A DNA stretch of 64,000 nucleotides, taken from the NCBI GenBank assembly GCA_000708835.1, contig DF237415.1:11982-75981 (forward strand). The letters are read 5' to 3'. Position 1 is the first letter of the stretch; the number at the start of each line of letters is the position of its first letter. Below are positions 896 to 62,453 of this stretch, one piece after another. Below the pieces are notes generated by a model. It ran no database searches. It was given only the letters and a program-made list of their open reading frames with translations, and was not told the origin of the DNA. The position numbers were made by a program, and so were the translations under genes. This stretch comes from Klebsormidium nitens (lineage: Eukaryota > Plantae > Klebsormidiophyceae).

Positions 896-3800
896 TCAGA
901 TCACCTCCTCGTAGCACCTGAGCGCAGGCACACAGGTCGGGGCACAAGGTATCCCCGGCTTCGCGCTTCCCCAGCTTGCCCCCCTGCCTACTCCGGTTGG
1001 CTGTTGACCCGGTCGCTCTGCTGGGGGTGGCTGGCGAGGGGGGTCCCTCTCACCTGGTGTGGCGGCGTGCCTGCCCCGCCTGGCGGAGTGCCGTTGCCGG
1101 TGCGCTGCCGGTGTGGGCCGCCCTGCTGCCGCTCCGCCTCCAGCCACTGAATGTGCTCCCGCAGCGCGCCCACGTCCTGCACCCGCGCCGCGCGCCCAGG
1201 CCACGTCAGCCACAGCAAGGCGCAGGCGGCCAGGATGCACGGGGTGGTGAGGCGAGAGGGGCCTTTGGCGCAGCGAGGGGGGGCTACCGCCTGCCGGGCT
1301 GCTCACCTCGTCTGCTGCGGCAAGCTGAACCTCTGCGGCCAGGTCGCGGCTGAGGCGGGGGCCGGGCCTGCAAAGGGGCAGCAGCGCGGCGGGGTGAGGA
1401 GGAAGCACGCGCCGCTGGCAGGGGCGGCCCGAGGCGCGCCGGGCAGGGGGCAGGCAGACAGGGGCGACGGGGGGCGGTCGCGCCCAGCCTCGCTGCCGCC
1501 TGAGCCTGCAGCGGAGGGGTGCAGAAGCTGGCGCGGGGCGGGCTCACTGCGGGGAGTGGCCCGGGTGCAGCGCGGCGGCGATGATGGCCTCCTGCTCGCC
1601 AATGATGGCGCGCGCCGCGGCCAGCTGCGCGTCCAGCTCCAGCTCGCGCTCGCTCGCCTCGTCCTCCGCGGCGCAGCTCGCCAGCGCCGCCATACGCTCC
1701 TGCGCCACCAGCGCCGCACGCATCAGGTGTGCAGCACGGCATGGGGGCGGCTGTGAGGACACGGAGCAGAGCGGGTGGCGGGGCAGGCAGGGGGGGACCG
1801 AGCAGGCAGGCGAGCGGGGCAGACCTGGAGAGACGCCATCTTGGCGCGGAGGCTGTGCTCGATGCGGTCGCGCGCGAGGGGATACGGCATGTCGAACACG
1901 TCCTGCACACAGGCACGCCCCGCACGCCTCAGGCTCATTGCCAGGGGCCATCAAGCAGCACCTTGCGAGCATCGCCCGAGCGCTCTCAAGGAGAACGACT
2001 CATGTTTCAACCGGGGACCACTGTGGAAAGTGGACCTTGCAAAGTTTGAGGTTTTGAAGAACACAACTCAGTGATCGTTGCACGCCGAAGCCAGGACTTC
2101 GCACCGAGTCCGACTTTCGCAACGTCATCCCGTTAACAACTCTCTCGTTCAAATGAAGACTCGGGCTCCATGACCCGGCTCAGCCGAGTGTGTCACAGGC
2201 TGCGCTCAAAGGCGCCATGCGGGGCCGCATCGCAGCAGCGGCGCCTCACCAGGCGGCCCTTGAGCGGGGTGTCGCTGGGCGTGGCCGCGCCGGGGCTGCT
2301 GGCGCCGCCCTCGTGGCCGCGCACCAGCCGCTGCATGTCCTCCTGCAGACACCCACGCGATGTGAGAAGGGGCAGCGACTGCGCCGCCCGCTGGTCCAGC
2401 AGGGGGAGGGGGAGGCTGGCGAGTCAGCAGAGGCGAGCGGATGGGGGGGGAGTGGCACACCCGGTGGGTTGCACGTACCTGGAGGGTGCGCAGCGAGTCC
2501 TTGAGCGCGGCGTTCTCCGCGGTGAGCTCCTGCTTCTTGGCCTCGTACGCGTCCACCTGCAAGCAGCACACCGCCACCGCAGCTCACACACACAGCCCTG
2601 CGGGCAGCACGCAGGCGACACAGGGGGCATGCCAACGGCCAGGACAAGAGGGGCAAGTCCACGTGGGGCAGTGCCACAACGGAAGGGGATGGGCGACCCG
2701 GCAGATGTGCACGGGGAAAGGGTCTGGGGCCGGCCCACTGACAATCATCTTGTAGAAGTCGCCGTCGGCCTTCTTGCCGTCCCACGTGCCGCGCTGCCGG
2801 CCGCCCTTCTGCGCAGCGCACAAGGGGCCCAGCGTCAGCACAGCGGGTGGGCCAGCCTGGAGGCCAAGCAGAGCCGCAGGGCCTGCGGAGGGAGGGGGTG
2901 CACGCACAAGACGCGTCCGTGCAGGGGGGCCCCTCACCTGCAGCAGCGTCATAATCTCCATGCCCCCCCCGCCCAGCTTCTCCTTCTTCTCCGCCATCAG
3001 CACGCTCAGCCGCTCCTGAACACACCCAGCCCGGGTCGCACACTCAGACAGCGAACGAGAGGGGGAAGGGCCGCTGTGCGCCTGCCAGCATCTTTGCAGT
3101 CTTTGCGGAAGCCTTCTGGCGATAGTTGTGTAGGATCCGGAGGCGGGGTGCAGGCGCGCTGACCTGGAGGCGAGCGTAGTGGCCCTCCTTCTTGCGCAGC
3201 TCGTGCTGTAGCTGCGCCTGCCGTTGCTGCACACACCAAAGCACACACGACACCGCTCAAGCAGAGCAGCAGCATCAGGCGGAAGATAGCCGTGCCCAGG
3301 CAGCAGCGCGCATGGGGGGAGGCCCTCTGCCCATGGCGGCCAGGGCTGCCCCGAAGGAGCCGTGCCCAGGACCACGGCGACAGCTCTTGGCGCGGCGCCT
3401 CTGCCCGCGCGGTGGTGCGCACCTGGAGGCCGGTGGCGATGCGGTGGAACTCGTCCCGCTCGTCCTTCATCTTGTCCAGTGCCGCCTTGCCCGCCGCCGC
3501 CGCCTTCTGCTCCTGCACACAGTCGCCCTCGCACAGCTTCAGGCAGGGGTTTGTAGTTTGTAGTTTGTAGCGCAGCGCTAAGCCGGAGCAGGGCAGCAGA
3601 GCAAGGGGAGCCCGCAGCTGCAACTCGCTTGGGCTGCGCCTCCCGTTGGCGTACCTTGGTGACCGCAGCGGCCAGGTCGCGCTCCCGCGCCTCCAGCTGG
3701 GCCTGCAACCGCTGCACGCGCGCCTCGCAGCGGCTCAGGTCAGCCGCCAGCCTGCAGCGCACATACACACACCCGCAGTGAGGCAGCATTTGGCCGCGTT

Positions 3801-4949
3801 CCAGCCGCAAACTCTCTTGGCACCCATCAGGAGCACACGAGGCCGCTCAGCAGCGGCGCCCGCTGGCAGCCCTGCCAGAGATGCGCGGCAGGCCAGCCCC
3901 GGCGCCATGCGGTGGACTGAAAGGGGATTTGCGCGCAGGGCTGGGGCCTGGGGGCGCACCTGTGGCGCTGCTCCGCGGCGCTGTCCCGAAAGTCCACGTC
4001 CCGCTGCCGCTGCTGCAGGAGGGAGTACACGCAGTTGCATACCGCCGCTGCGGCGTCCTGCAAACAACAGCAGCAACGACAGGGGGCCACGCTCAGGCAA
4101 GGCAGGGGGGACAAGGTGGGGGGCAGCGACCAGCGGGCAGAGCCAAGGAGGGAGATGGCGCGCAGGCACAGGCACGGGGAGTGACCATGAATTCCTAAGG
4201 GAATCCCACCGGTGTGAGGAGTTGCAGCGGGGCCGGGTGGCGCCTCACCGCATCGTAGGCTTGCAGGGGCAGCGCGGGAAAGCCCGCAGCAGCCAGGCTC
4301 TGGTTGAGGTACCGACAGCAGCTCTCAATGTTGCCGCCGTCCGCAAATTCGTCCTTTCTGCACGCACACAAGGCACAACCATGGAGCTGCACCTTCGGGA
4401 GAGTATGGAAACCTCGGGCTGCCCGGGAGCAAGACAAGGAGGGGGCAAATGCCCGGGGGGCCTCCCTTCAAGACATGAGCTGGTAGGGAGAATGGGGCGC
4501 ACCTAGTGAGGGCCATGATACTGGCTGCTGGATGAGCTTGATCGTCCTGCAAGCAAGGGGACCTCATGTCAAAGAGGCAGGGCCAGGCCGCGGGAGCGTC
4601 TTCTATAGGCAGTGACGTCGGTGACAGATGCAGTGTTCAGGAGGGCACCAACAAAGTGCTTCAGTGATCTGGCAATTGAGATCCTCCAAGCCTCCAGAGT
4701 GCTTGCTCTGCCCAGGCTGGGCTCAGCACTGGCGTCAGCCTGGTGCTGGCAGCGACAGGGGGCGGGCCACGCAGGAGAGCTGCGCCCCCCTCTCCTGGGC
4801 CACATTACGGCAATGCCAGTGCTGGGCAGGCCCGCAGAGGACAGCCCCCCCGGCGTCTGCAAGGAGCCGCCCGTGCTCACCAGGTGGGCCATCATGGCAT
4901 TCTCCGCTGCAGGAAAAAGGGCCTCCTCCGCCAGCGGCCGCAGGGCCAT
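896..4949 (-). CDS. Afadin/alpha-actinin-binding (ADIP/SSX2IP/Msd1-like) coiled-coil protein, multi-exon; 5' end uncertain (ATG at 4949 or 4516)
   Basis: Spliced exons read ..MALT-R-KDEFADGGNIESCCRYLNQSLAAAGFPAL.., AAVCNCVYSLLQQRQRDVDFRDSAAEQRHR, LAADLSRCEARVQRLQAQLEARERD, DKMKDERDEFHR, QLQHELRKKEGHYARLQ, RGTWDGKKADGDFYKMI and VDAYEAKKQELTAENAALKDSLRTLQ. These match plant ADIP-family proteins as I recall them. GT-AG junctions are in phase at 4504/4357. The 3' stop (TGA 896-898) is tentative. Confidence 0.8.
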
Positions 4950-5549
4950 TACACGATCGCGTGTTTGGTCCGCGTGGTCAACATCTAAGCTTCTTGCCTC
5001 AGCGAGCTACTCCACCCAAGGTTGAAACTTGATGGAGAGTCTCCAGGACCAGCGGAATCTGTTCAAAACTTCGTCGTTGGACTCGAAAGAAAGGAGCGGG
5101 CAAGACTTCTACCCGCCTCAGAATCAGATTGCATGGCAGCAACTTGTGAGTTTGAAGACTTCAATTTCAACTCCAACGGAGTCCAAGTTCTCAAGCGAGC
5201 AGTAAATTTGTGCTCGCTTCAACAGTCAACTTGCTTAAATACGGTAGTAGGATTCTGCCTGCCTCGCCGTTTTCCCGGCGTTTGGAGTAGCAGCCACATT
5301 CTACGGTATACACCCTAGTACCTACACCGAAATGTAAACTAGAAACTGGCTCATGCATGCATTCCACTTTTTGCCTAATGCTTGCATAATATATCAAGCA
5401 ATACAGCCAGCACTGATCTGTTGCAGCGTATGGCCGGCAACGTAGAGAGTTTTGGGCGCGCTTCTCCCCCCTCCGTTCTGCACGATCGTGAAATTGAACA
5501 AAGCCAGTGAAATTGTTGAGTTCACCCTCAAGCAGGCTCCGCTGCATCT

Positions 5550-8500
5550 ATGGCGGCGGGCAGCGGCGTCCCTCCTGATAACACTCTGCCGCTGCTGCAG
5601 TTTGTGCCGTGGCAGAGTGCAGTGGATGTGGGCTTCTGGCAGAAGCTGGCTGCGCGCAAGCTGGCGGAGCTGCGCCTGAGCGAGGCCGAGCAGCCGCTGG
5701 CGGGCCACTTCACCGCCAGCACCCACACACAGGTGAGCGCTGCGCCGCCTGCCCCTTAGCTGCGCCGGGCCCGCTGTGCTCCGCAACTGTGCCTTAGTGC
5801 TGTCCAGCGGTGCCCGCCCCGAGTGTGAGCAGCTGACTCATGCCTGTGGTCTGCCCTTCCCCTGCCAGCTGTCCTCCCCCCTCCACGTTGGCCCGGACGC
5901 CTGGGCTGGGGGCGTCAGTGAGGGCGCAGTGCGGGGGGGGCGTGCGGTGGCCCCTGGCTCGTGTGTGTTGACCAACACTCTGGACGGCTTCAAGCAAGCG
6001 GACAAGAAGGCCCTCCTGCAAGCCGCCGCCGCCAAGGTCTGCGCCCCACACCACCACCCTCTGCGGCCCCCCTGCCGTGCATCAGTAGGCTGCTCATCAG
6101 CCATGGTCAGTCAGTACTCTGGCGCTGTGCACCTGGTGCTTCCTCCCTGTTGTGGACTGTGCGGTCCCTCTGCGTGCCCCCTCCTTCTGACGCCCCCCCC
6201 CTGGTGCAGGTATGGGCCGCCATCGTGTCGGGCCAGGCGGAGCGGGACTCGGCCCTGCTCAACCGCTTCTTCCTCCTCACCTTTGCGGACCTCAAGAAAT
6301 GGGACTTTGTCTACTGGTTTGCCTTCCCCGCTCTCGTCCTGCCCCACCCCGCGCGCGCTGCCCCGCTGCAGCCCGCCTCCACAGTGTACCCCCCCCCCTC
6401 GGGGAGGCCATGGCCCGCGCCTGCCTGGCCTGGAAGCAGGCGCCCCCGCCGGCCCCTCCCCCGGATGCAGTGGCCGGCCCTCCGGGTGACGCTGTCAGCG
6501 ACCTGGCTGCGCGCTTGGAGGCCAGCAGCGTGGAGGATCCAGGGGACGTGGCGGCGGCCAGCGTCGGGGGGGGGAGCCCCTTCTTCCTGCTGCACTGTGC
6601 GGAGGGGGAGCAGGTCACCGCCCATTCCCTGGAGCACTGGAGCGCGCTGCAGCAGCAAGCGGGCACAGTGAGCACGCCACACTTCTTCTGTGCCTTGATA
6701 GGGGGTGACCTGCGGTGGGGGTCGCCGCTGTCGTCGGCGCGTGGGCCTGAGGGAGGGCTGCCCCCTGCTTGCTACCCGCACTCTGGCCTGGCTGCCGTGG
6801 TAAAGCCTGTTACCCTGGGCTCTGACCTGGGGTTCCGCTGGAGGAGTATGTGTACACTCTTCTTCCAAACGGCATTGCAGGTCTCTGCTTTCCGCGCTGT
6901 CTGCATTGATAGCTGGCCATGCCTCCCCTGTTCTCCCTCTCCAGCCCGCCCGCCCCTCTCTGCTTCCCCTGACCCTGCGTCGCTCTGCCCCGCTGCCCCG
7001 CAGGTGGTGGCTGTGTATTTGGACCCGTGCCACCTGGCGTCCCACCCGGGGTGGCCCCTGCGCAACCTGCTGGCGCTGGCCGTGGTGCGCTGGCGCGTGC
7101 GCACGTTGCCCGTGCTGGCGCTCAAGGAGACCCGCGGCCGCCCCGACTGGGACCGCTCCCTCGCCACCACCGTGCACCTCCCGGACCTCCCGGGTCAGCC
7201 CCCCCCCGCCCCCCTCCTCCACGGAGCCCCTGCACGTCTTCCTTCTGGTGGCCCTTCACTGCGTGGCTTGGAAGCCCCACGGGGTCCGAGAGACTCGCAG
7301 GTATTCGAAGCCAGTGCGCATTGAAGGTGGTGAGTAGTGGCGCTCTGCGCTTGGCTCCCCCTTCTGACCGCCAAGGTCCGTCTGTGCAGAGTGGCGTGCC
7401 ACGGGCGCTCCCTGCCCTGCAGCAGTGGGGTGGGAGCGGTCAGCAGCGGGCGCCCTGGGTCCGCGCGTGGCGGCGCTGGGCGCGGCGCTGGACCCAGTCC
7501 AGCTGGCGGGCGCGGCGGTGGACCTCAACCTGCAGCTCATGCGCTGGCGGCTGCTGCCCAGCCTGGACCTGCCGCGCCTCACCGCCACGCGCTGCCTCCT
7601 CCTTGGCACAGGCACGCTGGGCTGCGCGGTGGCGCGCACCCTGCTCGCGTGGGGCGTCAGGGACATCACGCTCGTCGACAGGTGAGGCCCTCCCTGCAGC
7701 TGGTTCCAACAGGAGGGCAGGCCAGGCCTGGCCGCTGCATCTTCCCCCCAATCCGAGACCCCGCCGCCTCCGCTGCTCCCCGGAGAGGGTTCGACCATTT
7801 TTCACCAACTTTCTATCCTCTTTCGAAAACACTGAATTCCTTCCGGCGACACGTCATGGTTCTGATATGTGCTATGCCAGTGGTCAATTTACGAACATCA
7901 TAGTTTCTCCGGCATCGAAGATCGGAGCGAAACCATGTCCAGAAGACAAGTTTTACGAGAGATGACGTTGAGTCGCAACCATAAGCATTTCTGCGGCTCA
8001 GACTGATTTTCCCGAATTTCGGTCGGAGTCTATGACGGCAAAGTGTCAAGTGTGTTCCTATCCGTACGTACCACGTAATCGCATGTGGTGTATGCCGTAT
8101 ATGGTGGTGCTTTTGCCGCCTCTAAGGGGCCTCCGAGTAATGGAAACTTAGTCTCAACACTGAAACGTCAGCAAACGTCATCTTGGGTACAACTCACAAC
8201 GAAGCAAAACACGGTTAGTTTAATGCGAACCCTTCCCTGGTCTGACTGACTGTCGCTTCCTGTTCGTCTCGTCGGCCGCAGCGGCGTGGTGTCCTTTTCC
8301 AACCCAGTGCGGCAGTCTCTGTTCACGCACGCCGACTGCCTGGCCGGGGGCCGCCCCAAGGCGGAGGCTGCGGCGGCCGCTCTGCGCGCCATCTTCCCGG
8401 GGGCGCAGGCCAGCGGGGTGCGGCTGAGCATCCCCATGCCGGGCCACGCGGTGGGCGCACGCGAGGCGCCCGCCGTGCTGGCGGCGTGCGCGCAGCTGGA

Positions 8501-9741
8501 GCAGCTCATACAAACGAGCGACGCGGTGTTCCTGCTCACCGACACGCGCGAGTCGCGCTGGCTGCCCACGCTCCTGGCCGCCGCCCACAACAAGGTGCAA
8601 TTGTGACGCCGATACCCCCTGCTTCCGCAATCATGCAGGATTGTCCAGTTTTCAGGGCTCCCGGGTTGTTGGCAACCACTTGAGGGCGCGCTGCCTGCCG
8701 CCTGACGGTGGCCGCCCCGCGCTGCAGCTGGCCATCAACGCTGCGCTCGGCTTCGACACCTTCCTCGTCATGCGCCACGGGGCAGGCCCCCTGGCTGCCC
8801 CCCCGCCGGCTCCCTCTGCGGACGCGCCTGCCGCGGCTGGGGCGGCGGCTCCGCCCCTGCGCCTGGGCTGCTACTTCTGCAACGACGTCGTGGCGCCCCT
8901 CGACTCCACGGCCGGCAGGACACTCGACCAGCAGTGCACGGTGAGCAGCCGCCAAGCCACGCCCGCTGGGCCCCGCCCGCCGGCCGGCACGCGCAGGGAC
9001 AACAATAATGGGCGGGAACATGGTTCCATGCGGCACCGCTCGTGCTGACGGCTGGTGTGCTGTCCGCAGGTGACGCGGCCCGGGCTGGCCCCCATGGCTG
9101 CGGCGCTCGCGGTGGAGCTGCTGGTGGCCCTGCGCCACCACCCCGCCGGCCTGCACGCCCCCGCTGACAGCACGCCCCCGGGGGCCGCCTTCCCGGCCGG
9201 GGCTACGGCGCAGCCCCTCGGCCTCGTGCCGCACCAGGTGCGCCTCGCCGTGTTCCGCCATCCGGCATTCTGGCATGCATGCGGCCTCCCGGCCTGCCTC
9301 GTGTGCGCGGCCTGCCAGCGCGGATGACCGCAGCTGAGCCGGGCGGCCGCGGCGTGCAGGTGCGCGGCTTCCTGGCCTTCTTCTCGCAGCTGCTGGTGAC
9401 GGGCCACGCCTTCGACAAGTGCACCGCCTGCTCCGCGGCCGTCGTGCGCGAGTACCACCACCGCGGGCCCGACTTCCTGCTCCAGGTCAGCCCGCCCCGC
9501 GCCCCCTCCGCCCCACACAGCACCGTCAGATGAGGCACCCCCCACTGCCTCGCCCGGACGGACTGCTGTGACCGGCGCCACGGTGCGTTGCCTGACCCCG
9601 CGCCCGGCGATGCAGGCGTTCAACACGCCGACGTTCCTGGAGGACCTGACGGGCCTCACCGCGCTGCGGGCCGCCACAGACGAGCTGCTCGCGGAGTGGG
9701 AGGCAGGCGACGACTCCGCAGCCGACGCCGACGACTTCTAG
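5550..9741 (+). CDS. ATG7: Autophagy E1-like enzyme ATG7, multi-exon
   Basis: N-terminal [18 protein letters not shown]; [23 protein letters not shown]; [10 protein letters not shown]; [14 protein letters not shown]; ThiF glycine motif [10 protein letters not shown] (~7600-7625); [12 protein letters not shown]; [17 protein letters not shown]; [13 protein letters not shown]; active-site RTLDQQC (Cys codon 8935-8937) TVTRPG. TAG at 9739-9741. Confidence 0.97.
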
Positions 9742-11128
9742 GGGGCCCCCTTTGCGCAAACGGCACCGCAGAGCGGCTGGAGCGGCTCCGCAGCATCCGG
9801 CTCGGCCGACCCGGGCTTTGGCCCTCAGTGAACTTGGTGCAAAGCGTTCGTTCTGAATGAGGAGATTCCTCATCGTTCGCCATGGGTACTTGCTCGGCGC
9901 AATTATCATCTGCGAACGTCTTCTGCTCTCAATGATGCCCGCGATCCAGCGGGTTGTGCAGGCTTGCCTCCCTTGCGTCATGGACGACGTCGACCCACCC
10001 CCGACTGCCCTGGAAGGGTGCAGCGCACCCGGCTGCCTAGTCAGCGGGCCGGGACAAGAAGCTTCACTCCTGGGCGGATACCAAGGAACGCGAAAGGAAT
10101 CTCGCCGATCATTGACCCTGCATGATGCTCGTCATGCAGCCGCGCTGTGCTTGCATGAACGAAAGCAATATTGTATCAACGGGGTGACGAATGCTTGGCT
10201 TGAAATTTGCTTCCGAGCAGGCCGTAGAGCCATGCTGTCTACGCGGACGGAAGTGATGGCAATCTGAAAAGACAAACGTTCGCAGCGAGCCCCTTACCAA
10301 TCTATATACCCGGCCCGTTAGGCCCAGCAGCCGCAACCTCAACTCAACAAAACATCAGAGCACTGTGTACATTAACACTCTTTACAGAATGAAAGGTGGT
10401 CACCCGTGTCTGCTTCTACATACTTTATACGGAATTTATGGCAATGACATATGTTGCAAGTAAGGTTCAAGTCTCTTTCTAAGGTTTCTCTTTGCGACAC
10501 CGCGCATTGACTGAAGTCAGATGTGCGAACAAGCCTCTACATTCCGGATGCTGCTGATCGAGTGGGCATGTGGCCTGGCTAATTCATGTATGACGGTCTA
10601 TACGCCTCCTGATCTGCTTTAGCTGCATGCATGACAGATTACGCGGCACGGGCTGATCGGCTGTACACGTATACCGGCGTCTAAGTTAAAATGATACATG
10701 AAACAGATTGGTGGCCGAACGTGACTATATTAGTCACTGCTCATGTGCATGCATGCCAGCACATGTGTGCGCTTTTTGTATGAACCATCCAAGCGGTCGG
10801 ATCGTCAGTCGGACGTCAGGTCCAACTTGAGCGAGCGGCGTCGGGGACTATCTCGCCGCAATCACTGAGAAATGGTGTTGGCAACCTTCAATTTTCAAAA
10901 TAGCTAGTCAGCGCGCTCACTTGTGCGTACCTTCTAAAAATTGTCTAAGGAGAATCGATTCGATTCGTTGTGTCTCGGCCTTTCAATGGTCCATTTTTGT
11001 GGCCAGAACTGTTCGGTCGCGTGCCGAAGGTCCGGCTTCATATTCGCGCCTGCAGTACTGTTCCTAGCAAGAGCAACCTTCTCTGCCTAGTGCTGGCCGC
11101 CAGAGGCATGCGGTCGGCCCCCTGCAGC

Positions 11129-14100
11129 TCATTCAATGTACATGCCAAACCCAAGGTTCTTCGGCGGTCGCTCAATCATCCAGGGGGATCTGCACAACGA
11201 CAGCCCCGCCATTACCCAGCCGCGGCAAACCGCACTCCCCCTTCAAGCGCATCCAAGGCCGCCACGAGCGCAAGTCAGGCTGCCTGCTCACCAGCTTTGC
11301 GGCTGGTGAGCAGGCAGCCTCGCCGTGCAAACCGACCGGTATGCGCTACACGGGCGGCAGCGGAGCCCCGGAGCCACACTGCCGTCATTGGGACTGCTGC
11401 GGCAGATGGCTTCAGGATGCGCATCGGGCAGGAGCTGCAGGCAGGGCGCGAGCCAGTGGGCAAGGGGGGGGCTCACTTGTTGGTGACATACTGGATGCAG
11501 CCCTCCGCGGCGCGCTCCAGCAGCCGCGCCCGCGCCGCTTCGGCCACGCCTCCCTCCTGCAAGCCGGAAAATCTGTCAGCTTCAGCGGGACGCATGCGGG
11601 CAGGGCACGTGGGCACACCCCAGGCCAGCAGGCTGCGCGCAGGCGGCGGGGCGGGAGCGGCGGCGGCGGCGCTCACCTCTTCCGGGTACCACACGCCGGG
11701 CTGCGTGGCGCCCTCCAAGACGGCCTGCGCAAACGCGGCGGTGGCAGTGCCCACGCACCTGCACCACCCAGGCGCCGCAGTCAGTGGGCGCAGCAGCCGG
11801 GGACAGCGCACAGCGAGCGCACCCTACTGCGTCCATGGCCACGACCCAGCGTGTGCCATGGGCGAAGGGAGGGGCTCACTCGGAGAGGCGTTTGTGGGAG
11901 TAGAGGGAGGCGGCGCGCACGCCGTCGGAGCAGTCGAGGTCGACGCGCATGGCGCACGCCTCGCCCACACGGCCGTCCACTAAGCGCACCAGCGGCTCGC
12001 TCAACGAGGCCAGGCCCGCCACACGGCGGCGGTCGTTCAGAAAACTCTGCACAGCCACAGCCAGCGACGCGCGCACTCTTCAGCCGGAGCCACGTGCAGA
12101 CCGGGGCGTCGTGGGTGGGACGGCCCCCTCCCGCACGGACATGACCACGAGATGTACAGTGCAGATTCGCAATGCCTCCCCGCCCGGACACGCCATCTCA
12201 ACTTACAGCCCGCCAGCCAGCAGGAGCAAGCATGGCAGGTCGTGCACCGGCGCAGCGGGAGGGACCATGACCACAGACGAGGGGCCCACACTGGGGCGGG
12301 CAGGCCAGGGGAGGCCTGCTCCCGACACTCCGCCGACCCGTCAAGCCAAGGCCGGAAAGTTGCGATAAGGACGAAGGCTCCGCTGTGCTCGTGTGCCTTT
12401 CTTAAATAATTAGGGTGGGTGGGTGGGCAGGATTGCGGGTGGGTGGGAGGGGGCGGCAGCGCGCACCCGCGGCAGGAGGCCAACAAGCTGCATGGCGGTG
12501 TTCCAGAAGAAGGGCGCCGTGCCAAAGCGCGCGCTGACGGAGGGCACGCCCAGGCTGCGGTGCACCGACTCCACCTCGGGCAGCTGCCTGCACGCACGCG
12601 CGCGCCGCGAGGCAACGCACGCGTCAGGCAGCACACACACAGGCTCACAGCAACGGGATCCATCAGGGCAGGCAGCCCCATCCGCAAGCAAGGACATGTG
12701 ACGTGCTGCATCAAAGCAGGCAACCTCTTTCCATGACCAGATCTGTACACTATGGTAGCGCATTGGATCACGGTGACATCGTGCGGCAAAGCCACCCCCG
12801 CCAAATATGCTTGGCAGAAAGGGGAGGGCAACCGCAAGGAGGGGCAGAGGTTGCGCACTGGAATGTGCACCCTTTGGTGGAAGGTGGGGTCAAGAAGAGG
12901 GGAGGGCGGCAGGGCTCACAGCAGGTAGACGGCGCGCTTGCCGATGCCCTTGCCAAAGTCGACGGTGGTACCGCCGCTGTACGGCTTAAGGCGCACGGGC
13001 TCGCCTGCACAGGGACACAGGAGAGCGAGGGGAAGAGGGGGCGCCAGCAAACGAGTCGAAGAAAAGCTACATGAGCCTTACATCCGGTACTAGGGGCGGG
13101 GCCAGCCAGAAAATCATCAATCCATGCGAGACAAAATTAGAGTGAGTCACCCCCAGGCAGCCCGGCTGGCCACAGCGCAGTATCTGCAGCCTGAGTCAGC
13201 ATGTTGGGACAAGATGGCAGACTCGCTGCCCTCTGGCAGCGGTGTGCGGCGCACCTTTGCGGTAGGCCACCACGTCCTCGCCCATGAGCAGGAATGACGT
13301 CTGAAGGATGACCGGGCCAGCGCCGCCGCTGCCCGCAGTGAAGTAGGAAAACCTGCGGGGGCACGGGCAAAGCCATGAGCGGGGCAGCGGTGGGGCCAGC
13401 ACAACTGGGGAACAGACATGCCCACCAAGATGACCTCCAGCCTGCATCCATTGGGCATTATAAGGACATCAACAAGAGCAGGCATGGCCGCCCCCTCCCC
13501 AGGGCCCCTGTCATCCCGAGCTTGCCTGATCCGTTCGGGCGTGCGCTCCCCCCCAGCATCGCCTTTGGCAGTGCCCCTCCCCGCCTCGCGCACCAACTCC
13601 GCCGCCATCACTGCACCGCGCCCCGCCCACGCTCAGGCAGGCAGGCAGGCAGGCAAGCAGCAGGGGGGCCGCACAGGCAGGCGAGACAGCAATCAGGGGG
13701 CCAGTAAGGGAAGGGGAACCGGTGGCAGCAGGCCCGCGCAGAGGGGGCCACTACGAGGGTGATCCCCCGCAGGGCGGAGCAGTGTGCGGGGGGGCCAGCT
13801 GCGGTCTCACAGTTGCTGACCCCGGGGTAGATGCCCCCCGTGGTGATGGCCGCCACGCCCGCCTGGCGCGCAGCGTCGTGGTAGCCCTTGGCGCGCAGCG
13901 CATACGAGCAGTCGTCGCACACGTCCACGTACGCAGTCTGGAGCACAGACAGCGCACAGCGGAGGTCAGCGCAGGGAATGGCCAAGTTGGGGCAGGCGGG
14001 CGGCAAGAAAGGGAGGCAGGGACAGGGGGGGACGGGATAAGAGAGGGAGGGGCGGCGGGTGCGGCGGTGTACCTTGGTCTCAATGCAGGCCTCCAGGACA

Positions 14101-15125
14101 TTCATGGCCCAGGGGTGGGCGGTGGCGCGCTGGAAGGGGCCCGCCGTGTGCACCACCACGTCCGCACCTGCAGCAGGCCCGCACACTACTCACACACCAA
14201 GGGACACGCGCAGCCTGGGGCACCGCGCTGACGTAGGCAGTGACAACAGAACTCGCTCTGCCACAGATTTGAGGAAGCAAGGCGAGGGCAAGCACATGCG
14301 GCAAGTGCCAGGCCGGCCCCCACCCCCCTCTTAGAGAAACCCCGGGTGGCTGGGGGGCGGGCTCACCCTGGACGGCCGCCAGCACGGAGGCCTTGTCGGT
14401 GATGTTGCACTCGAGGAACTGGGCCTGGGGCACGCTGGTGAGGACGCGCTGCGCCCGCTCCCTGGAGCAACACACGGACCCGCCGCGCTGAGAGACAGCG
14501 CCGCGCCAGGCGAAAAAACAGGCAGGGCAACCATGAGGGGAGCTGGCGCCACCAGCAACACGGCAGACCACGAATCAGGCAACAGCCCCCACCCACTTTG
14601 CGATACATCCTTGCTCACAAAAGAAACCGCCCGCAGGGTGCGCCCTGCCCCAGCTGCCGCGCCTCACCTGCTCCTGCCGGCCACGACCACCGCCAGCGCC
14701 TGCTCCTCCTCCCCCACCTGCACCGTCCTGCGCGCCAGCGCCGCCGCCGTGGACCCGCCCACGCGACCTGTCCCCCCAATCACCAGCACGCGCTTGGTGG
14801 TGGGGGCCGCCCTGGCAGGCGGGCGCGCCTCCGCAGGGGCCTCTGAGGCAGACACCGCCCCACGCACCAGGGGAAGGCGCCCGGGGGATGGCGCGTGCGC
14901 ATGGGCAGGCAGGGCCGCAGGGCGCGGCAGCCAGGCAGGGGCCCAGGGAGCGGTGGGGGTGGTCCGAAGGGGGGAGCAGGGGCCAGGCAGCCAGGCAGGC
15001 ACAAGGGCGGGAATCAAAGCGCGGCTGCGCCCCACCTCACGAGAGACTCGAGGACGAGAGGGGGCAGGAAGGCAGGCTGGCCGCCACAAGGGAAGGGCAG
15101 CGCAGGCACAGGAAGCATCGGCCAT
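11129..15125 (-). CDS. Saccharopine dehydrogenase-like NAD(P)-binding oxidoreductase, probably plastid-targeted
   Basis: Transit-peptide-like N-terminus, then Rossmann motif KRVLVIGGTGRVGGSTA, ADVVVHTAGPFQR, YVDVCDD, ITTGGIYPGVSN, FSYFTAGSGGAGPVILQTSFLLMGE, ELPEVESVHRSLGVPSVSARFGTAPFFWN, VGEACAMRVDLD and TQPGVWYPEE. The last exon gives K-SPWMIERPPKNLGFGMYIE*, TGA at 11129-11131. This resembles the plant plastid SDH-like family. Confidence 0.9.
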
Positions 15126-15860: not shown

Positions 15861-20973
<5,113 letters not shown>

Positions 20974-31389: not shown

Positions 31390-31459
31390 AGACGAGTTGA
31401 CAATAGGGGGTCCTTTTTGTGTGTACTGACATCACTCACAGAGTCACACCACACCTATG

Positions 31460-48092: not shown

Positions 48093-48614
48093 TTAAAATG
48101 TTTCAGCCCAGCTGGAGCGAGTAAATAACATTGTGAGAAACGTTGTGCCGGCAGAGAGCCCTCGTCAAGATAGACGGTTGGAAAGCCGGCATCAACTGGC
48201 CAATGCCTCTGAACGATACAACCTAATACGGTACCATGGTACCGTACACAGCTAGTAGGCGGTATGGTTTCGGGTGTGTCGTACCCCGTCGGCGCTGGTC
48301 AAGAGACCGTAGGTAGGTAGGTACCGGTGCGGTGAAGGCTCTAGTCTAGAGAGTACCGCGGTAAGACTTCGCATGTGTATAATATGTAAATAGGTACCTA
48401 GAAAGGCAAAATCCCTAGCCACAGCCAGCAGGGCTCTGCATGTTTCAATGTGTTTGCCATAGGTACGCATGTTTTCCATTGCCCTTTCGCTTAATATCTT
48501 GAAGTTGTAAACCGTAGCTGGGTCCAAGACTCCGAGTGGGTCCAAGTCGCAGAGCAAGAGATTTCGCTAAGCTGAGCTTCAAATTCTACGTTCTATTGTT
48601 CTAAGCCATCCGCA

Positions 48615-51540: not shown

Positions 51541-54414
51541 GATAGAGGTTTCATTAAAACGCGCTCTCAAGGTGTTGTGGTACGTTATTTCCAGTGACAC
51601 GTGCCAATGTGAACTTGAGATAACAGGTTTTGTACGTTGTCGAGAGCATTCAGAGCCCCTGAATGTCATGCAGCAATCTGTTAGCCTAGGCTGCCCGATC
51701 AATCAGGATCAAGATCCATGTTGTTGACGTACTATTGATAGGTGAGCAATCAAGGATGCAGCCGGTCACCATAGGCCGCACTGCATGCTTCGGGAACTCG
51801 GTAGTACAATAGTAAGATTAATCAAGTCAGTAAGTCAATAAGCAAGACCCGGACTAAAGTAAGATTGAGGTATGATGCTTGAAAGAGGTCCAGCCTGTAC
51901 AATATTGAAGCTCGCCCGGTTGAACTATTCTTTTTCTTGTCAGGATTCAGTGCTTGACTCTGACCTCCACTTCAACCAGTGGTCAAGCCCGTCTTGACTT
52001 GGATCAAGCATTGAATAGGGCAGGGCCGCTTGAAGCATATATGTGCTGCATCAAGTTTGCGACGCTCCTTGGACAATTCAAGAAGTCATGCACTACTAAT
52101 TCATAAGATCTGACCTAGGGAAGTTGCTCGCTGCCCTTCATTCATGACTCAGCCTGCATGATGATCGCACGCAATATAGGTTCAAGGCTACAGTAGCGGC
52201 GGACAATTTTTACCCGCTCGTCAATATTATATCATTGCTATAGTACAGAGTTGCATATGCCATGTGTGCATGCCGCCGGCAGTGATATGGGCATTCAATC
52301 CCTTAATATCATAAACCTACAGGCACGCCGTTCGCGACTAGCTCGAGTTCATGTGCAATCATGAATGTGCAAATGAATAGGACGTCCATGCAGTTTCAAG
52401 CTCTGGCATGAAAGCCGATGATCGGCTGCATGTTTCTTTGTACCATATGCACAAGCAACCTATGGTGGGTATCGGCGGTCTCGATCGCGCGACGGTCCGG
52501 TCACAAATTTGAATCACCGGTGTGTCGCGTCGCGACAATTACTGTACGCGGTACTGACGACCGTGCAGACCGGTACTTGAGAATCCGGTGCGAGTTCATA
52601 AATTAGAATCTGTCTGACATTCCGATCGTCAGAAACTTCCGGAGTTTCCGGCGGTACGGTACCGATCAAGTCTGAGAGTACGTGAAACTTGAAAATCATG
52701 GTTTCGATCGGAAGTTCCGACTCGAACCACCCTAGAGTACCGCGGTACCTAACTTGAAAGGAGAGTGCAGAAGATGGAAACGGGAGTGTAGGGAATGGCG
52801 CTTTTTAGAAGCAAGCAATGGCGGCCAACTTTGCAGCCACGATGGTGCTTCTTCCGATTTGTCCTCAACATAACAAGATGTTGGAGCTTCGAAGGAGCCT
52901 TCATGACGCTCTCCCAACATTTTTTTCTGCTTGTCAGAGGTTTTTATAAGCTGCATATGGCTCTTCTTTGCGTGCCAATTTGATGCTCCTCTCAAAGTGT
53001 AAAACCTGACACTGTCTAAGAATCTCCTCACACTTACTTACGGCCCGGCAAAATTTTTCTGAGTATTTGTACCGCCCGAGTAACATAAACCTGAGTAGCC
53101 GTGACGCGAACCGCCGGTAACACTGACGATATTCGATACGCGCTAAATCGATTTTGTGGCGGCCGGAGTCGGAATCGACTCGGCCGGTACCCACCATAGG
53201 TAGCTTGTGTGTCGGCATATACTTTAGATCGAAGATTCCTTTGGCATATGCTGTCATGGCGCGTGTCACTGTGCAATACCTCCCAAGGTTGGTTTTGGTT
53301 CCGACTAATACTATAAGCGTCAGTTGTACGCCACAACCAAACTTGAAACGTACAGCTAGGCCATGGGTTTCTCGTGTATACAAGTACAAAGATTTTCCGA
53401 GTCATCATGCAATTGCGCACGCCTGCAAAAACGTATGCTCCGGCTAGCCTGAACCTTGGAAGAGTATTACACAACGTACCCCTTTCGAATTTTACTTGGC
53501 AACGTCAATTTGACTAGCCAGTCATATTGTCAATTGACAGGATTGCACGTAGACAATACCGGCCCTGGGCTCGCGCCATATATACTACAAGCCGCCAAGC
53601 CTATAAAAAATTCCCTGCTTAATTGTCCATACGTACACGTACATATATGCACTCGGTGCATCAATCGATCTTAGCAACCAGGCATAATCGCCGCGACGTG
53701 CCATCTTAAACAATAATCAATCAGTCGCAATATCCGCATGTGCCGCGTTGCATGGACTAGAACCCTCTAGCTAGGCGGCCGCGGAGAGCTGCAAATTTCG
53801 AGCAGCGCGCCTCGTTGCAAGCTATACTATGACTGCATTCGGCGGTGATTAGTGCATTGAGCGCAGGCTACTGATTGTGCGCATACTTGAATTCCACCTC
53901 CAGTGCCAGGTGGCTTGTGCGCACGTCGAGGCTGTGTGGAAAGCGGCACCAATCTTGCGGTTGGAGCTCGCGCGCGCGCGCATATATGAATCGTCTACCT
54001 TGTGTCACTACCGCTGGACGGTAGTACCGTCCAGCAGACTGAGAAGTAGGTCAGGCACTACGACAGGCGAGTCCCATGAAGTGCGGGGCTGGCTGCCATC
54101 CACCCGCACTCGAGTCATACTTCATGACCAGCCAGGCAACCAACTTGCCAAGATTGTATATGAGCGTAGAAGTGTGATTCTTGGACCTAACATGCACCCG
54201 CCCGGGGACCGGTGAATTAATGCATGACGCTTGCTTCTCTAAGATCCGATGACCCTCAGTGGGCTAATCAATACCGCGTGGCCGCGGGTCCCAGTATATA
54301 CAGCACAAGCATACATGGCGGGTCAGAAATCCGAGATGAAATGCTCCGTCTCGTTAGATTTTCTTGGCGAAGGAAAGATGTCGTCTGCCTTGTTGCATAG
54401 CCGTTAGTGCCTCC

Positions 54415-56580
<2,166 letters not shown>

Positions 56581-57344
56581 ATTGGCAGCCTCAGTCGCAT
56601 CAGCAGAAGATCAATAAAGGAAGGTGAAGGCGCCGCAACAAACGCTGTGAGAGCGATGTTGCCCCTCGGTGTTAATTCGCTTATAGATTTCTTTTGCTCA
56701 CAGTTTCGTTGTTTTACAATAGGCATGATGTTTTGCGGCACGGGGCAGCGCATATCAGCACCAAGGCCAGCATTCTAAAACAGGCTAACCAGGGCAATTT
56801 CAACGCCTCCGCCAGCAAACATTGTTTTTGCAGACATGATTACAATCTTGCAGAGTCTGCAGCTAGGAAGGTGTAAGGAAGAACGAAGAAACTTCTCACA
56901 AAACCTCTCGGACACAAGGCAGAGTCTGAATAAGCAGCATTGTTCACCTGGCCATTGCAGTGGCCCAGACGCACTACACAAGGTAGTAATACTTCAACTT
57001 ACTAGTAAAACCCAAAGAACATTCGCAGCATGATTTGCGAACACCATTGCGGAGCTGGTAGGCACGATGCATACATGCAATGCTGCTGGTCTTACCTCCC
57101 ATGAGTTTCTACAAGGAATCCCAGCAGGGACCCTATGCTTCACTGGTCTGCTAGGCAAGCTGCTGCTTAGCGGCGCCTGAAACTTTGAGCATCCAATCAA
57201 CCGAAAATCTCCACAGTCCAGACCTGATCAAGAGCTGGAACTTGAAGAGTGTAGGCCAGGGGCAGGGGCCTCCTAGACCTCGATTGCAGGCGCCATGCAG
57301 GCATAAAAGTGCTTGTTAAATCCGTGCGATAGCGAGGGTGGTCT

Positions 57345-57842
57345 ACAAATTAATAAAAACCGTATATCGCAGATGTCGGGTGGTCTACAAAATTGGAATC
57401 CCCGGGCGGTTGTCACAGGGAAGTACCGGGCAAACTAAAAACCTAGGATAGAGTGACCGCCACACACCCTAATGTCACTGGGAAGTGCCCGGTTGTCACT
57501 CGGTTGCCCGCGAGACCCTAATGTCACAGGGAGGGCCCGGTTGCTTCCCGGGCGGTACGCGAGACCCTAATGCTAGTGGACTTGCAGTGCTGGTTGAACC
57601 CGGGGCAAGCCGTCGCGAACCACCACCCCACCCCCTCCAATTGAGACGGTCGTGGCGAGCAACTTTGTGGGTCGACACGGTCGCGTTGCGCACGGTCGAT
57701 ATCGGACCGTGCGTTGCCGATCGTACGGTATACGATGCAGCCGCGGTCCAACCCTGTTGGAGTCAAATAGGCCATTTCGCACGGTCTTGACAATTTTGTC
57801 GGGAGCATCGACATCTGCGATATATGGTTTTAACTAATTTGT
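57345..57842. mobile_element. Non-autonomous TIR element (~500 bp) with internal subterminal repeats
   Basis: Left acaaattaataaaaaccgtatatcgcagatgtcg..acaaaattg (57345-57395) matches the reverse complement of 57791-57842 (acaaattagttaaaaccatatatcgcagatgtcg..acaaaattg). Internal repeats ccctaatg and cggttgtcac. No clear target duplication. Confidence 0.8.
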
Positions 57843-58734
57843 CCGGTCGTCGATCATCGCATGGAAATAAGCCACTTTCCTTACTCGCGCGCCATCATCA
57901 TAGCTCTGGCAATATGATTGCGCCCTCATTGGCATCAAAATGGGCTAGGAGGGACACCGCCCTTCGGGCGGTATCCTCCTAGTATGGGTTCAGTGGCTTC
58001 GCGGCCCTGCCAAGACCGAACCGGCCTGAGTTTGAGGCCGATGAGAAGGTCTTTATGTCCGGTAGGGCGCCTTGGTGATTCTTTCCGGGCGCTCAGCATG
58101 ACCCCGGTGCGTACCGCGGTCTGACAATCCCGTGGTTTTGGTGAAATTAGGTTTAATGGTTATATAATTTGAACTTGGTTCATGTTGCGCGCGAGCCAAT
58201 ATGTCCCCCACAGAATTCGCTCGCGGGCACATTTTGGACTGCATTTTGCGCACGTTTTTCCGGAGTTTTCTCACGATGCAGCTTGGCACGTGAGAAGGGG
58301 GTCTTGATTCCTACTGTCTCCTACTCCTAGCCAACCAGGGTAAGCTTAGATGAGTGTACTCGGCCTCTGTCTAGCCTAGACTCTAGAGGTACGTACCCCT
58401 TTTCCAGAAGGCATGAATCGCCCCCCCCCTCGCCTCTTCTCTGTTCGATGTCTTTCCATATACGGTTACCGGGTAAATATGCTGCATGCAAATTTAACGT
58501 ATATACCGGATCGAAATTGCAGGGGGTTTTGCTCGAGATATATGATCTGGTTTTCACTCGGTAAATCAGCCCTGGGGCCCGCAGATCGATATGCAAGCAA
58601 TGGAGCCTCAAGCCCCTGCCCCCCCCTTGCATGAGTTACATACAGGGGGACCAAACACCCCATGTAAGAAAGTTAGCAACATGAACCATGTGCCAGCAGC
58701 TAAACGGCTAATTGCCCGGAACTGAAGATTATAA

Positions 58735-59076
58735 GGGTAAGGTCACGTTGAAGCTGACCCCCTATGTTCAGTTCAGAGGGTGGGGGGTTGGGGGTTTGGA
58801 ATCCTAAGGGCAGCGGGAGAGGGGGGGGGCTCGGGGTTTCCGCCACTTCCGCCATGGTCGAGCCGCGCAGGCTCGGAAATTGTTGTAATATCGGTCTGAA
58901 AATGCTGTTTTCAGGGGCAAAATAGCCGCAAAACACACATATTCATACAGCCGGAGGGGGGGGGGGCTCGGCTTATGCTTGAGTGGAGCACAGCGGGAGG
59001 GGGGGGGGTTTGGCCGTTCGGGTCTCGAGGGGCTCTGGACTGAACATAGGGGGTCCACTACAAAATGACCCTACCC
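58735..59076. mobile_element. PIF/Harbinger (Tourist-like) MITE, 342 bp, TAA target duplication
   Basis: TAA (58732-58734) | gggtaaggtca..gaccccctatgttcagttcagag ... ctctggactgaacatagggggtc..tgaccctaccc | TAA (59077-59079). About 45-bp imperfect TIRs starting GGG with a TWA duplication. Confidence 0.9.
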
Positions 59077-59537
59077 TAATTATTGGGATTGAAGATCATT
59101 GAACCTCCACAGGGTCACCTTTCAAAACCCAGAGTTTGGGGTCCGGGCAACGCGCCGTTTTAGTTACATTAGTAGGAGGAATTGGAGGTAGGTTTAGGTA
59201 GGTTAACAAGCCAAAAAAGTATCAACCCACCTCTAACAATTGTATTGACCATTTCTCCAGACTAACCGAGGACCACATCGGGCTCGGGACATCCAAAATG
59301 CAATCTTGACCGTCCAGATTGGGAAAGTTCTCATCTGACGGTGCGGATCATGGTTCGCTCTGTTTCAGTGGTGTTTGGTTCCCCTGGCAACATACCGGTG
59401 AATAGGATACAGCAATTGGAATTTGGATCGAGATTTTGAAACCTTGGAACCAGGAACTTGAACTTGAACTTGAACTTTCAAATTCAACTCGAAGTGAGCC
59501 TCAGAGTCAGAGTCACAGAGAGATCACACGTTGCACA

Positions 59538-62453
59538 ATGGCGGCCACTGCAGTCTGCAGAGGGGTGGCTGGAACGAGCACTTTCGTTGTCTCGTGCCCT
59601 GTAGGCCAGCAATGTGGTCAGGGGTACAGCCGCAGCGGGGTGGCAGGACCGTGCCACTCCCCTACCCTGCAGCGATCGGGTCCGGCGGGCGCAGCTCAGA
59701 GCGCTGCCGCAGCAGCACTACGAAGCTCCAGCTTTGCAGGCAGGCAGGTGGCAGGAAAACAATGCAGGGGGGTGGCAACACGAAAACTCACAGCGGGGAG
59801 ACCCGGGGCGAGGGCGGCGGAAGCAAAGGACGACGAGTACGTGGTGACATTGGAGAAGCCGGTGGGCCTCAACTTCTATCGAGGCAACGACGGCGGAACG
59901 TACATTGACAAGATCCAGCCAGGGGGCTCTGCGGATGCCACCGGCCTGTTCACCGTGGGGGACAAGGTGCTGGAGACAAGGTGGGCCGCCCTCTCCGCCC
60001 AGCGCTGCAGATCTGGCAGCCGGAGCGCCCTTTCTCTGCCGCGCCCTGCCACACGGGAACGTGGTGTAGGTGCTTGTTGGTATGCAGCATTGCCCTTGCT
60101 GGCCTCATGGTGACTGAGCTTTGGCCAGCTGTCCGCCCAAACAACAGGCGTGCTGGGTTGATGGCATTTTTAGGGCCGCACTTGCTGCTACGAACTGGAG
60201 GCCGCCCGCTGGGCCTGGCCTAGAGCGTGCAGCGTTCCGCTCACAGCAGCTGCCCCCTCGGCAGCGGAACAGACCTTAGAGCGAGCTGCTCGCTGGTTGC
60301 GCTGGATATGGCTGGAGGAAGGAGCTCACCTCTTTGTTCTCCGATGTGAATGTGTCCAGTCTAATGATGTGTCCAGTTCATGCTTCTGGCTCCTTCTGTC
60401 CAGTTACCCAGCGCACGCACCCCGCTTGCCGCACTCTGGTCTGACTGCTCTGCTTCTTCTTCTGCACACAGTGCCGTGTTTGGGACAGAGATGTGGGGCG
60501 CCGCCGAGTTTGGGCGCACCATGTACACCATCAAGGTAGGTGCCTGCCGGGGCGCCTCCGCGTGGTGGCGCACAGCAGGAGCAGGCAGATGCGCCCGCTC
60601 TTCCGCGCCCATAGTGCCAACTAGAAGATCATTGCAGCACTTGACTCAGTGCTTGCATATTGTCGAACCCCAGCCGTGCGCATGGCCCGCCTAAGCCCTG
60701 TGTGCACATCCCAGTGCCCATAGCGTTGTTATACTGGGCATGAAGCCTTGGCCTGATGCGGTGCTGGTCGCCTGTGGTGCAGACGCGGGTGGGCAACGTC
60801 GCGTTCAAGATGCAGAAGAGGTTTGGTGAGGCCGCCCGCCAGGTTGCCACGCATTAGTGGCAGCCAGATGCCGTATGTGCACTGCCATTTGTCATTCCGT
60901 ACTTGTGGCAAGGCCTGAAGGGGCGGGTGCGGGCCAACTGCCCGGCTGACACGGCGACTGGCTTGTGCTGTGCAGGGGTGAAGCAGGAGGTGGCAGGCGC
61001 ATCGGACCAGTTTGTGCAGGAGAGGCGCTCCGGCAACTACGGCGAGGGCAGCAAGGAGCTCCAGGTGAGCGCCGCCCGCCCGCCGTGCATCATCGGAAAA
61101 CATGTATCGCTCCCGGAGTTCAAGGCTCAGGGGGTGACAGGCTCCAGGGTGTGGCCGGGGTGGCCCGCCAAGTGTGAGCCAAGCGTTGTCGTGGCGCCAT
61201 CTGCTGCATCAGGGACACGGGCAGCCATGCCAGGGGGCATCCTTTCGGTCGTCCCTTGCTGACAGGCAATGTTTCGATTGACCCATACCGTCCACTAGTT
61301 CTCCGCTCTACTTGTGCGCACACTACCCGGGCTGGACAAGCCAGGACCTCTTACGGCAGCTGGCAGACGGCAGCGTCCTGTCAATGGCGCTGCGGGTATT
61401 GGGGGCTCTGCTGACCTGCGCGTCCGCTGCCGTCCATGCAGCGGCGCAACTACCTGAAGCAGCAGGAGCTGAAGAAGCTGCGTGCCGACAAGATCGAGTC
61501 TGGCCTCAAGCTCTACAGGTGAGCCGCATCCCGCGCAAGCCCGCTCTCCTGCCCTCGAGGCGACCCTGCCTCCTGGCCTGCTGCAGCCATTGCTGGCCGG
61601 GTGGGCCGAGTGTCCCCCTCCGGGAGCGTATCTGACTGCGCGCTGCGGTGGGCGCAGGCAAGGCCAGTACGAGGCGGCGCTGGTGGAGTTCGAGACGGTG
61701 CTGGGGTCCAAGCCCACGGACCGCGAGGAGGCGGTGGCCAGCTACAACGTCGCCTGCTGCTACTCCAAGCTGGGCAACGTGAGCGCCGCGCAAGCTGCCA
61801 CGTGGCAGCCACTCAGCCGAGCAGCCACTAGGCATGTCGACATGCGCGGGTCGCTGGTCTTGCGCCTGCCAGTTTCCCGTTTCAGCCGCGCATGCTCTTC
61901 GAATCTTCATGCACACTTGCGGGACGCACTCGCGTCGCCTTTGCTGACCCCGCCCGTGCTCACCTGCTCTCCTCAGGTGGAGGCGGGGCTGGACGCTCTG
62001 GACAGCGCTCTGCGGGCCGGCTTTGACGACTACAAGGTAAGCGACCCCGCGCGAAACCTGCTGCTGTGTCCAGAGCTGCTGTGTTGCCTGTCCACCCGCT
62101 ACGTTGAGATTCCGTCAGCACACCAGCTGCATTCTGGTCCGTAGCAACTCATTGGTTGCAAGCTCAGGCACTGAGAGGTGACTTCCGTACACTTCTGACG
62201 CGCCCTAGCGCATACCTTGACCACTACGATATGGCCACGGATCAAGATGTTCCACTTCGTTGCCGGTGCTCACCACATTCGACTAAGAAACACATTTCAT
62301 GCCTCCTCGCAGACTGTTCGGGAAGATGCTGATTTGCAGACCTTGCGGGACTCTCCAGAATTCAAGGTAATTGTTAATAAGTACGATGAGCCTTTCATAA
62401 ACGAAAACGCTGTGAAAGCCTTGACGAGTGTCTTTGGCTTCCTTAAAAGATAA
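59538..62453 (+). CDS. MET1: Plastid PDZ + TPR protein MET1/ZKT (photosystem II supercomplex assembly/repair)
   Basis: Transit peptide, then DEYVVTLEKPVGLNFYRGNDGGTYI..GDKVLET-SAVFGTEMWGAAEFGRTMYTIK-TRVG; ERRSGNYGEGSKELQ-RRNYLK; TPR EEAVASYNVACCYSKLG; ALRAGFDDYK-TVREDADL..KYDEPFINENAVKALTSVFGFLKR*. Confidence 0.93.

Follow-up and report, generated by a model that had tools for sequence, protein, structure and literature searches.

Fourteen functionally unrelated genes alternate in strand along a scaffold of the streptophyte alga Klebsormidium nitens

Do neighbouring genes of the soil alga Klebsormidium nitens tend to lie on opposite strands, or is a long alternating run simply what chance would leave somewhere in its genome? 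The question is raised by the last 64 kb (64,000 nucleotides, referred to here as the window) of scaffold DF237415.1 (GCA_000708835.1), which is 75,981 bp long; the right edge of the window is the scaffold end, and the record position equals the window position plus 11,981. Scaffold and window agreed at 100% identity, as compared over window positions 22867-43454. An earlier note on this DNA had described 14 genes in strict alternation, arranged as seven head-to-head pairs. Public annotation, exon-level Pfam matches and AT skew all agreed with that description: the strand order was - + - + and so on over all 14 genes, and the run is a real one of unrelated nuclear genes, in seven divergent pairs with their tails facing each other.

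Public NCBI gene models were used for window positions 1-14949 and 22867-64000 and for approximately 9 kb upstream of the window, and the gene in the remaining stretch (14950-22866), which encodes FtsH4, was called from Pfam matches on open reading frames (ORFs) rather than from public annotation. Homology searches were made exon by exon. The window has a G+C content of 59%, contains two runs of N (16532-17137 and 36974-37111), and has a gene density of about 4.4 kb per gene. The genes, with product lengths in amino acids (aa), were the following:

659-4949, minus strand: ADIP (afadin/alpha-actinin-binding protein), 436 aa; NCBI model with PF11559, ATG and TGA verified
5550-9741, plus strand: ATG7, 722 aa; NCBI model with ATG7_N and ThiF, exon Pfam matches
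11129-15125, minus strand: saccharopine-dehydrogenase-like oxidoreductase (SDH-like), 517 aa; NCBI model with PF03435, cut at the locus end, start codon predicted (candidate ATG at 15125)
15861-20973, plus strand: FtsH4-type AAA protease; ORFs matching AAA, AAA_lid_3 and Peptidase_M41, ends predicted, gap 16532-17137 in the 5' part
22271-23619, minus strand: SRP14, 122 aa; NCBI model with PF02290, exon Pfam match, 3' end predicted
24253-28108, plus strand: DnaJ (type I), 449 aa; NCBI model with DnaJ, DnaJ_CXXCXGXG and DnaJ_C, exon Pfam match
29761-31305, minus strand: protein like the one-helix proteins (OHP) of the light-harvesting complex (LHC), 177 aa; NCBI model, spliced K. subtile transcript ortholog P0128, distant matches carrying PF00504
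32867-33454, plus strand: HIG1 (hypoxia-induced protein domain), 82 aa; NCBI model, PF04588 with E=2.9e-18, P0001
35557-38652, minus strand: eIF3 subunit K (eIF3k), 243 aa; NCBI model with PF10075 across gap 36974-37111, minus-strand exons on both sides
39200-41023, plus strand: EMC10, 304 aa; NCBI model with PF21203
41890-47499, minus strand: GH32 invertase-like enzyme, 651 aa; NCBI model with Glyco_hydro_32N and 32C, exon match, N-terminal exon with ATG at 47499
48615-51540, plus strand: GH5 cellulase-family enzyme, 467 aa; NCBI model with PF00150, exon match, ATG predicted
54415-57102, minus strand: TRM8 tRNA (m7G46) methyltransferase, 283 aa; NCBI model with PF02390, exon match
59538-62453, plus strand: MET1 (thylakoid protein with PDZ and TPR domains), 345 aa; P0006 and NCBI model

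In the complete gene models the ATG and the stop codon were verified at the annotated positions. One limit had to be moved: the coding region of ADIP ends at 659, and not at 896 as previously given. Independent exon matches in Pfam backed the strand of ATG7, FtsH4, SRP14, DnaJ, HIG1, GH32, GH5 and TRM8; for MET1 such backing was weak. For FtsH4, the AAA, AAA_lid_3 and Peptidase_M41 matches all fell on the plus strand. Calculated on the plus strand, the AT skew of the gene bodies was negative for seven of the seven plus-strand genes (-0.05 to -0.17) and positive for seven of the seven minus-strand genes (0.00 to +0.26), with the OHP-like gene essentially at zero.

The members of each pair are unrelated in function, as had been proposed earlier. 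The annotated functions placed no two partners in a shared pathway or complex; a centrosomal adaptor is paired with an autophagy E1 enzyme, the partner of a tRNA methyltransferase is a thylakoid protein of the PDZ/TPR type, and that of an invertase is a GH5 glycosidase. In animals and plants, the two genes of a head-to-head pair occupy opposite strands, their 5' ends are separated by less than about 1 kb, and their functions are often unrelated. All seven K. nitens pairs are likewise on opposite strands with facing 5' ends and no gene detected between them. Head-to-head pairs in animals and plants are, however, a minority scattered among tandem neighbours, whereas the seven found here, with putative shared promoters, form an unbroken series.

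The weakest call in the run, and one on which the alternation depended, was the OHP-like gene, whose annotated 177-aa product at 29761-31305 (minus strand) was without a Pfam match. A 73-residue ORF of this gene (30404-30622, minus strand) bears the motif ELNGALALLGVAAGLAAE, and an exhaustive search returned seven relatives of it. The best full-length relative, P0128, is a 172-aa protein from a Trinity transcript of Klebsormidium subtile (EukProt), which holds, in the same order, exon segments visible in the K. nitens gene, and weaker matches carry the chlorophyll a/b-binding domain (PF00504). Together, the order of the exons in P0128 and the domain in the weaker matches establish a real, spliced minus-strand gene for a one-helix LHC-like protein, expressed at least in K. 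subtile, so the earlier call held up. The chlorophyll-binding motif in the K. nitens one-helix protein reads ELNGALALLG, in which Ala replaces the usual Arg and Leu replaces Met; the K. subtile ortholog is likewise without the Arg, having Val there (ELNGVLALLG).

The spacers between these genes differed in length according to whether they separated starts or ends. In gene order, the ATG-to-ATG distances were 600, 735 (with the predicted ATG of FtsH4), 633, 1561, 547, 1115 and 2435 bp, and the stop-to-stop distances were 1387, approximately 1297, 1652, 2102, 866 and 2874 bp. The median divergent spacer (735 bp) was thus shorter than the median convergent spacer (about 1.5 kb), a comparison local to this window. 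The four short divergent spacers, at 547-735 bp, match the sizes of about 600, 735, 635 and 550 bp given in the earlier note, and the convergent spacers, at 0.87-2.87 kb, match its range of about 0.9-2.9 kb; the size of the TRM8/MET1 spacer was corrected to 2.4 kb. Spacing of 547-735 bp between start codons would, barring introns in 5' untranslated regions (UTRs), put the start sites in four pairs less than 1 kb apart. The sole tandem spacer, between ADIP and a homeobox gene upstream of the window, was about 2.3 kb, including a gap of Ns. The spacers inside the run were:

4950-5549: divergent, ADIP/ATG7, 600 bp; from annotation, no inverted repeats
9742-11128: convergent, ATG7/SDH-like, 1387 bp; from annotation, ORFs without Pfam match
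15126-15860: divergent, SDH-like/FtsH4, about 735 bp; both ATGs predicted
20974-22270: convergent, FtsH4/SRP14, about 1.3 kb; from ORF ends, no Pfam match
23620-24252: divergent, SRP14/DnaJ, 633 bp; block 23847-24253 conserved in a K. subtile-like contig
28109-29760: convergent, DnaJ/OHP-like, 1652 bp; about 0.95 kb in the K. subtile-like contig
31306-32866: divergent, OHP-like/HIG1, 1561 bp; MITE-like element (miniature inverted-repeat transposable element) at 31630-31778, about 754 bp in the K. subtile-like contig
33455-35556: convergent, HIG1/eIF3k, 2102 bp; no Pfam match, about 0.95 kb in the K. subtile-like contig
38653-39199: divergent, eIF3k/EMC10, 547 bp; from annotation
41024-41889: convergent, EMC10/GH32, 866 bp; from annotation
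47500-48614: divergent, GH32/GH5, 1115 bp; nested inverted repeats at 47991-48086
51541-54414: convergent, GH5/TRM8, 2874 bp; no Pfam match, AT skew near zero
57103-59537: divergent, TRM8/MET1, 2435 bp; two MITE-like elements at 57345-57842 and 58728-59083

All three of the longer divergent spacers (1115-2435 bp) contained MITE-like inverted-repeat elements (31630-31778, 47991-48086, 57345-57842 and 58728-59083), whose terminal inverted repeats measured 18-51 nt. The earlier remark on MITEs stands as far as these terminal repeats are concerned and does not extend to repetition of the elements: comparison of the window with itself revealed no second copy of any of them within it, so that the label "MITE" here denotes the terminal inverted repeats and nothing further. 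A 49-bp tandem repeat was present at 57466-57572 in the TRM8/MET1 spacer. The longest convergent spacer (51541-54414) contained 24 GTAC sites, roughly double what a stretch of that length would be expected to hold.

Genes hidden in the spacers would break the alternation, a test that had been set beforehand. None was found by annotation, by Pfam search of 84 ORFs, by Rfam and tRNA scans, or by comparison with a relative. The public annotation, over the two parts of the window that it was used for, placed no gene in any spacer; 42 spacer ORFs of at least 66 aa matched no Pfam family; and 42 ORFs from both strands of 14950-22866 matched only the P-loop and M41 families of FtsH4 and nothing further in Pfam. 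The tRNA scan of the window was empty, no Rfam family reached its gathering score, and the AT skew of the long spacers was near zero. The three spacers that could be compared with the K. subtile-like contig were much shorter there and could not be aligned beyond about 250-400 bp from the coding regions, which argues against a conserved hidden gene. There is no detectable extra gene in any spacer, and unannotated non-coding RNAs could remain.

Some features of base composition were seen alongside these results. T exceeded A on the sense strand in 14 of the 14 genes, an asymmetry that could be an annotation-free predictor of strand in the K. nitens genome. Only one spacer segment, 57903-58302 between TRM8 and MET1, had a gene-like AT skew (-0.20), and it held no family-matching ORF. 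The G+C content was about 60-69% in window positions 1-28000 and then about 47-59% in 28000-64000, and the genes themselves were 68-69% G+C in the first 28 kb versus 50-67% further on.

The contig used for comparison, Logan contig L005 (run SRR23617307, 10.8 kb), is called K. subtile-like here; a single 90% cluster held both its OHP-like exon and the K. subtile transcript. It was collinear with window positions 23847-36933 at approximately 75% DNA identity and kept eIF3k(-), HIG1(+), OHP-like(-) and DnaJ(+) with their order and relative orientation unchanged. In this contig about 754 bp separated the start codons of OHP-like and HIG1, and each of the two convergent spacers measured about 0.95 kb. 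The distance of about 754 bp fits the idea that the long divergent spacers of K. nitens are ones of a 0.55-0.75 kb standard that were enlarged by insertions. Non-coding sequence was also conserved with L005 at 28109-28353 and 33455-33785, about 250-330 bp just past the stop codons of DnaJ and HIG1 and probably 3' UTRs, and in a block of about 400 bp (23847-24253) upstream of the DnaJ start, within the SRP14/DnaJ spacer.

Could the run be an artefact of spurious antisense models in GC-rich DNA, of missed genes, or of contigs put together in the wrong orientation at the two gaps of Ns? Two such gaps do lie within the run. At 16532-17137, within the 5' portion of FtsH4, N-terminal exons typical of FtsH4 start immediately to the right and a candidate first exon (MAFWRLL...) lies to the left, at 15861 on the plus strand, so FtsH4 is probably continuous over the gap; look-ups with the two adjoining ORFs found no independent contig spanning it. 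At 36974-37111, inside eIF3k, minus-strand exons flank the gap in N-to-C order and a single annotated 243-aa product spans it; searches of PDB and Pfam returned no matches by which the short eIF3k exons could be ordered across it. Against an artefact, 14 of the 14 genes had homology support on the stated strand, the AT skew agreed for 14 of the 14, the independent assembly of the relative repeated the order of four genes, and the second gap is spanned by one eIF3k model. An artefact is therefore very improbable.

A layout of this kind is known from brown algae. In Ectocarpus, divergent pairs account for 61.7% of the genes that border start-site intergenic regions, and intergenic regions have a median length of 409 bp between divergent genes and 2293 bp between tandem ones (Genome Biol 2021, PMC7784034). 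Pairs less than about 600 bp apart share one nucleosome-depleted region, yet are independently regulated (PMC7784034). A tendency to alternate is found across the brown algae, and in the Ectocarpales it involves over 60% of pairs (Phaeoexplorer preprint 10.1101/2024.02.19.579948). Like the K. nitens run, the brown algal genomes tend to have unrelated neighbours on opposite strands and have short divergent regions, which is unusual for a genome of at least 100 Mb. Unlike it, the bias there is genome-wide, at about 60-62%, whereas the observation made here concerns 13 of the 14 junctions on one scaffold of a streptophyte alga and comes from sequence.

The run is most likely to reflect a partial preference of this Ectocarpus type for opposite strands between neighbours in a gene-dense region, a reading to which we assign a probability of about one half. 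In its favour are the divergent spacers being shorter than the convergent ones, the collinearity of L005, the well-supported strands and the Ectocarpus precedent. Each pair would share one short promoter region, with 0.55-0.75 kb between the start codons, which MITE-like insertions may have lengthened in three pairs. The start-codon spacing of 547-735 bp in K. nitens fits the Ectocarpus picture, and by analogy with Ectocarpus the putative shared promoter region would probably be a single nucleosome-free region firing both ways. Pair members need not be co-regulated. Where 3' ends converge, a terminator would not abut the promoter of a neighbour, which may limit interference from read-through, and, with such a bias in place, luck would still account in part for an alternation without a break (13 of the 13 junctions). 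As to K. nitens as a whole, both the existence of a genome-wide orientation bias and its size are things that we infer.

The tails of the pairs can be compared with yeast, where bidirectional termination zones are reported between convergent genes (bioRxiv 10.1101/2022.11.02.514956). As in yeast, convergent 3' ends in K. nitens share one intergenic zone; the K. nitens spacers differ in measuring 0.9-2.9 kb without a common sequence signature, and in being seen at the level of DNA.

Several results weigh against the partial preference, and most of them suit the alternative that there is no orientation bias at all and that one long run, expected among about 16,000 genes, was picked out of the whole genome. 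Any one given set of 14 genes alternates with a probability of 2 x 0.5^14 = 1.2e-4, and the figure of about 1 in 8,000 given earlier is arithmetically right for one window. With random orientation, however, 16,215 annotated genes multiplied by 2^-13 give about two start positions and about one maximal run of at least 13 alternations. In other words, chance should leave about one 14-gene run somewhere in the genome, and the window alone is no evidence of an orientation rule. Upstream, the neighbour that the annotation gives to ADIP is a homeobox gene encoding 817 aa (window -6990 to -1653); it shares the strand of ADIP and thereby ends the run at 14 genes. This is the only junction outside the originally selected run; opposite-strand neighbours thus meet at 13 of the 13 junctions in the run and, with homeobox/ADIP included, at 13 of the 14 on the scaffold, in a window that was chosen post hoc. 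The tandem junction is itself not secure, since a gap of 929 Ns (window -1447 to -519; L004 15469-16397) lies between the homeobox gene (L004 16603-21940) and ADIP, 206 bp upstream of the homeobox start codon.

The remaining points on that side concern shared signals and conservation. No 7-mer or 8-mer was enriched in the four short divergent spacers as a shared promoter word, with weak 6-mers only, and a search for palindrome-rich zones in the convergent spacers found a few short palindromes only; TGACGTCA was absent from all spacers of the window. Pair conservation in related algae, named earlier as a check, was seen for the four genes kept in L005 and did not extend to other loci. A eukaryotic environmental contig of 51.7 kb and 48% G+C (L002; JGI metagenome 3300060285, contig Ga0590115_0003008) encodes a HIG1 that is 88% identical and contains no other gene of the window; within 10 kb on either side of its HIG1 there were no other recognisable genes, and the long ORFs of the contig had no Pfam match. 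Eleven metagenomic ADIP loci had neither ATG7 nor the homeobox gene nearby. Pure chance does not readily account for divergent spacers that cluster tightly at 547-735 bp and for the similar distance of about 754 bp in the K. subtile-like relative, and we consider it an unlikely explanation.

At the other extreme, the whole genome could be built of bidirectional-promoter modules and shared termination zones, with opposite strands for at least about 80% of neighbours, far above Ectocarpus. The alternation of 13 of the 14 scaffold junctions and the arrangement kept in the K. subtile-like genome would suit such a genome, which was the proposal of the earlier note; the tandem homeobox/ADIP junction speaks against it, as does the lack of any mention of such a feature in the K. 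nitens genome paper and the other literature searched. What stands of that proposal is the local layout, with short promoter-side and longer tail-side spacers, and its presence in the relative. The genome-wide step goes beyond these results: chance alone would give about one such run, homeobox/ADIP is tandem, and there is neither a shared motif nor palindrome-rich zones. We regard a genome wholly of this kind as distinctly unlikely. Similarly doubtful is the idea that in K. nitens, and perhaps in the genus, alternation is far above the Ectocarpus level of about 60%, for example with at least 75% of neighbours on opposite strands and a genome of about 100 Mb tiled with promoter-sharing pairs and tail-to-tail zones.

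The K. nitens genome paper makes no mention of orientation or intergenic regions, and a search of the literature for gene orientation, bidirectional promoters and gene pairs in Klebsormidium found no description of the layout. As far as was searched, the alternating layout thus seems to be undescribed for K. nitens, though this kind of feature is known from brown algae. To our knowledge, gene order in eukaryotes with genomes of at least 100 Mb is usually treated as near-random by strand, with Ectocarpus as the exception so far. Should the bias be shared or exceeded in K. nitens, an alga closely related to land plants, the layout would have evolved independently in two lineages. An independent origin, if true, would point to a general pressure in favour of shared nucleosome-free promoters and of avoiding read-through into the promoter of a neighbour. 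It would also be relevant to genome annotation, to the choice of promoters and safe insertion sites in engineering, and to the interpretation of co-expression. Were alternation to reach at least 75%, K. nitens would give the plant lineage its first example of such a genome and offer a natural setting in which to study how transcriptional interference shapes gene order.

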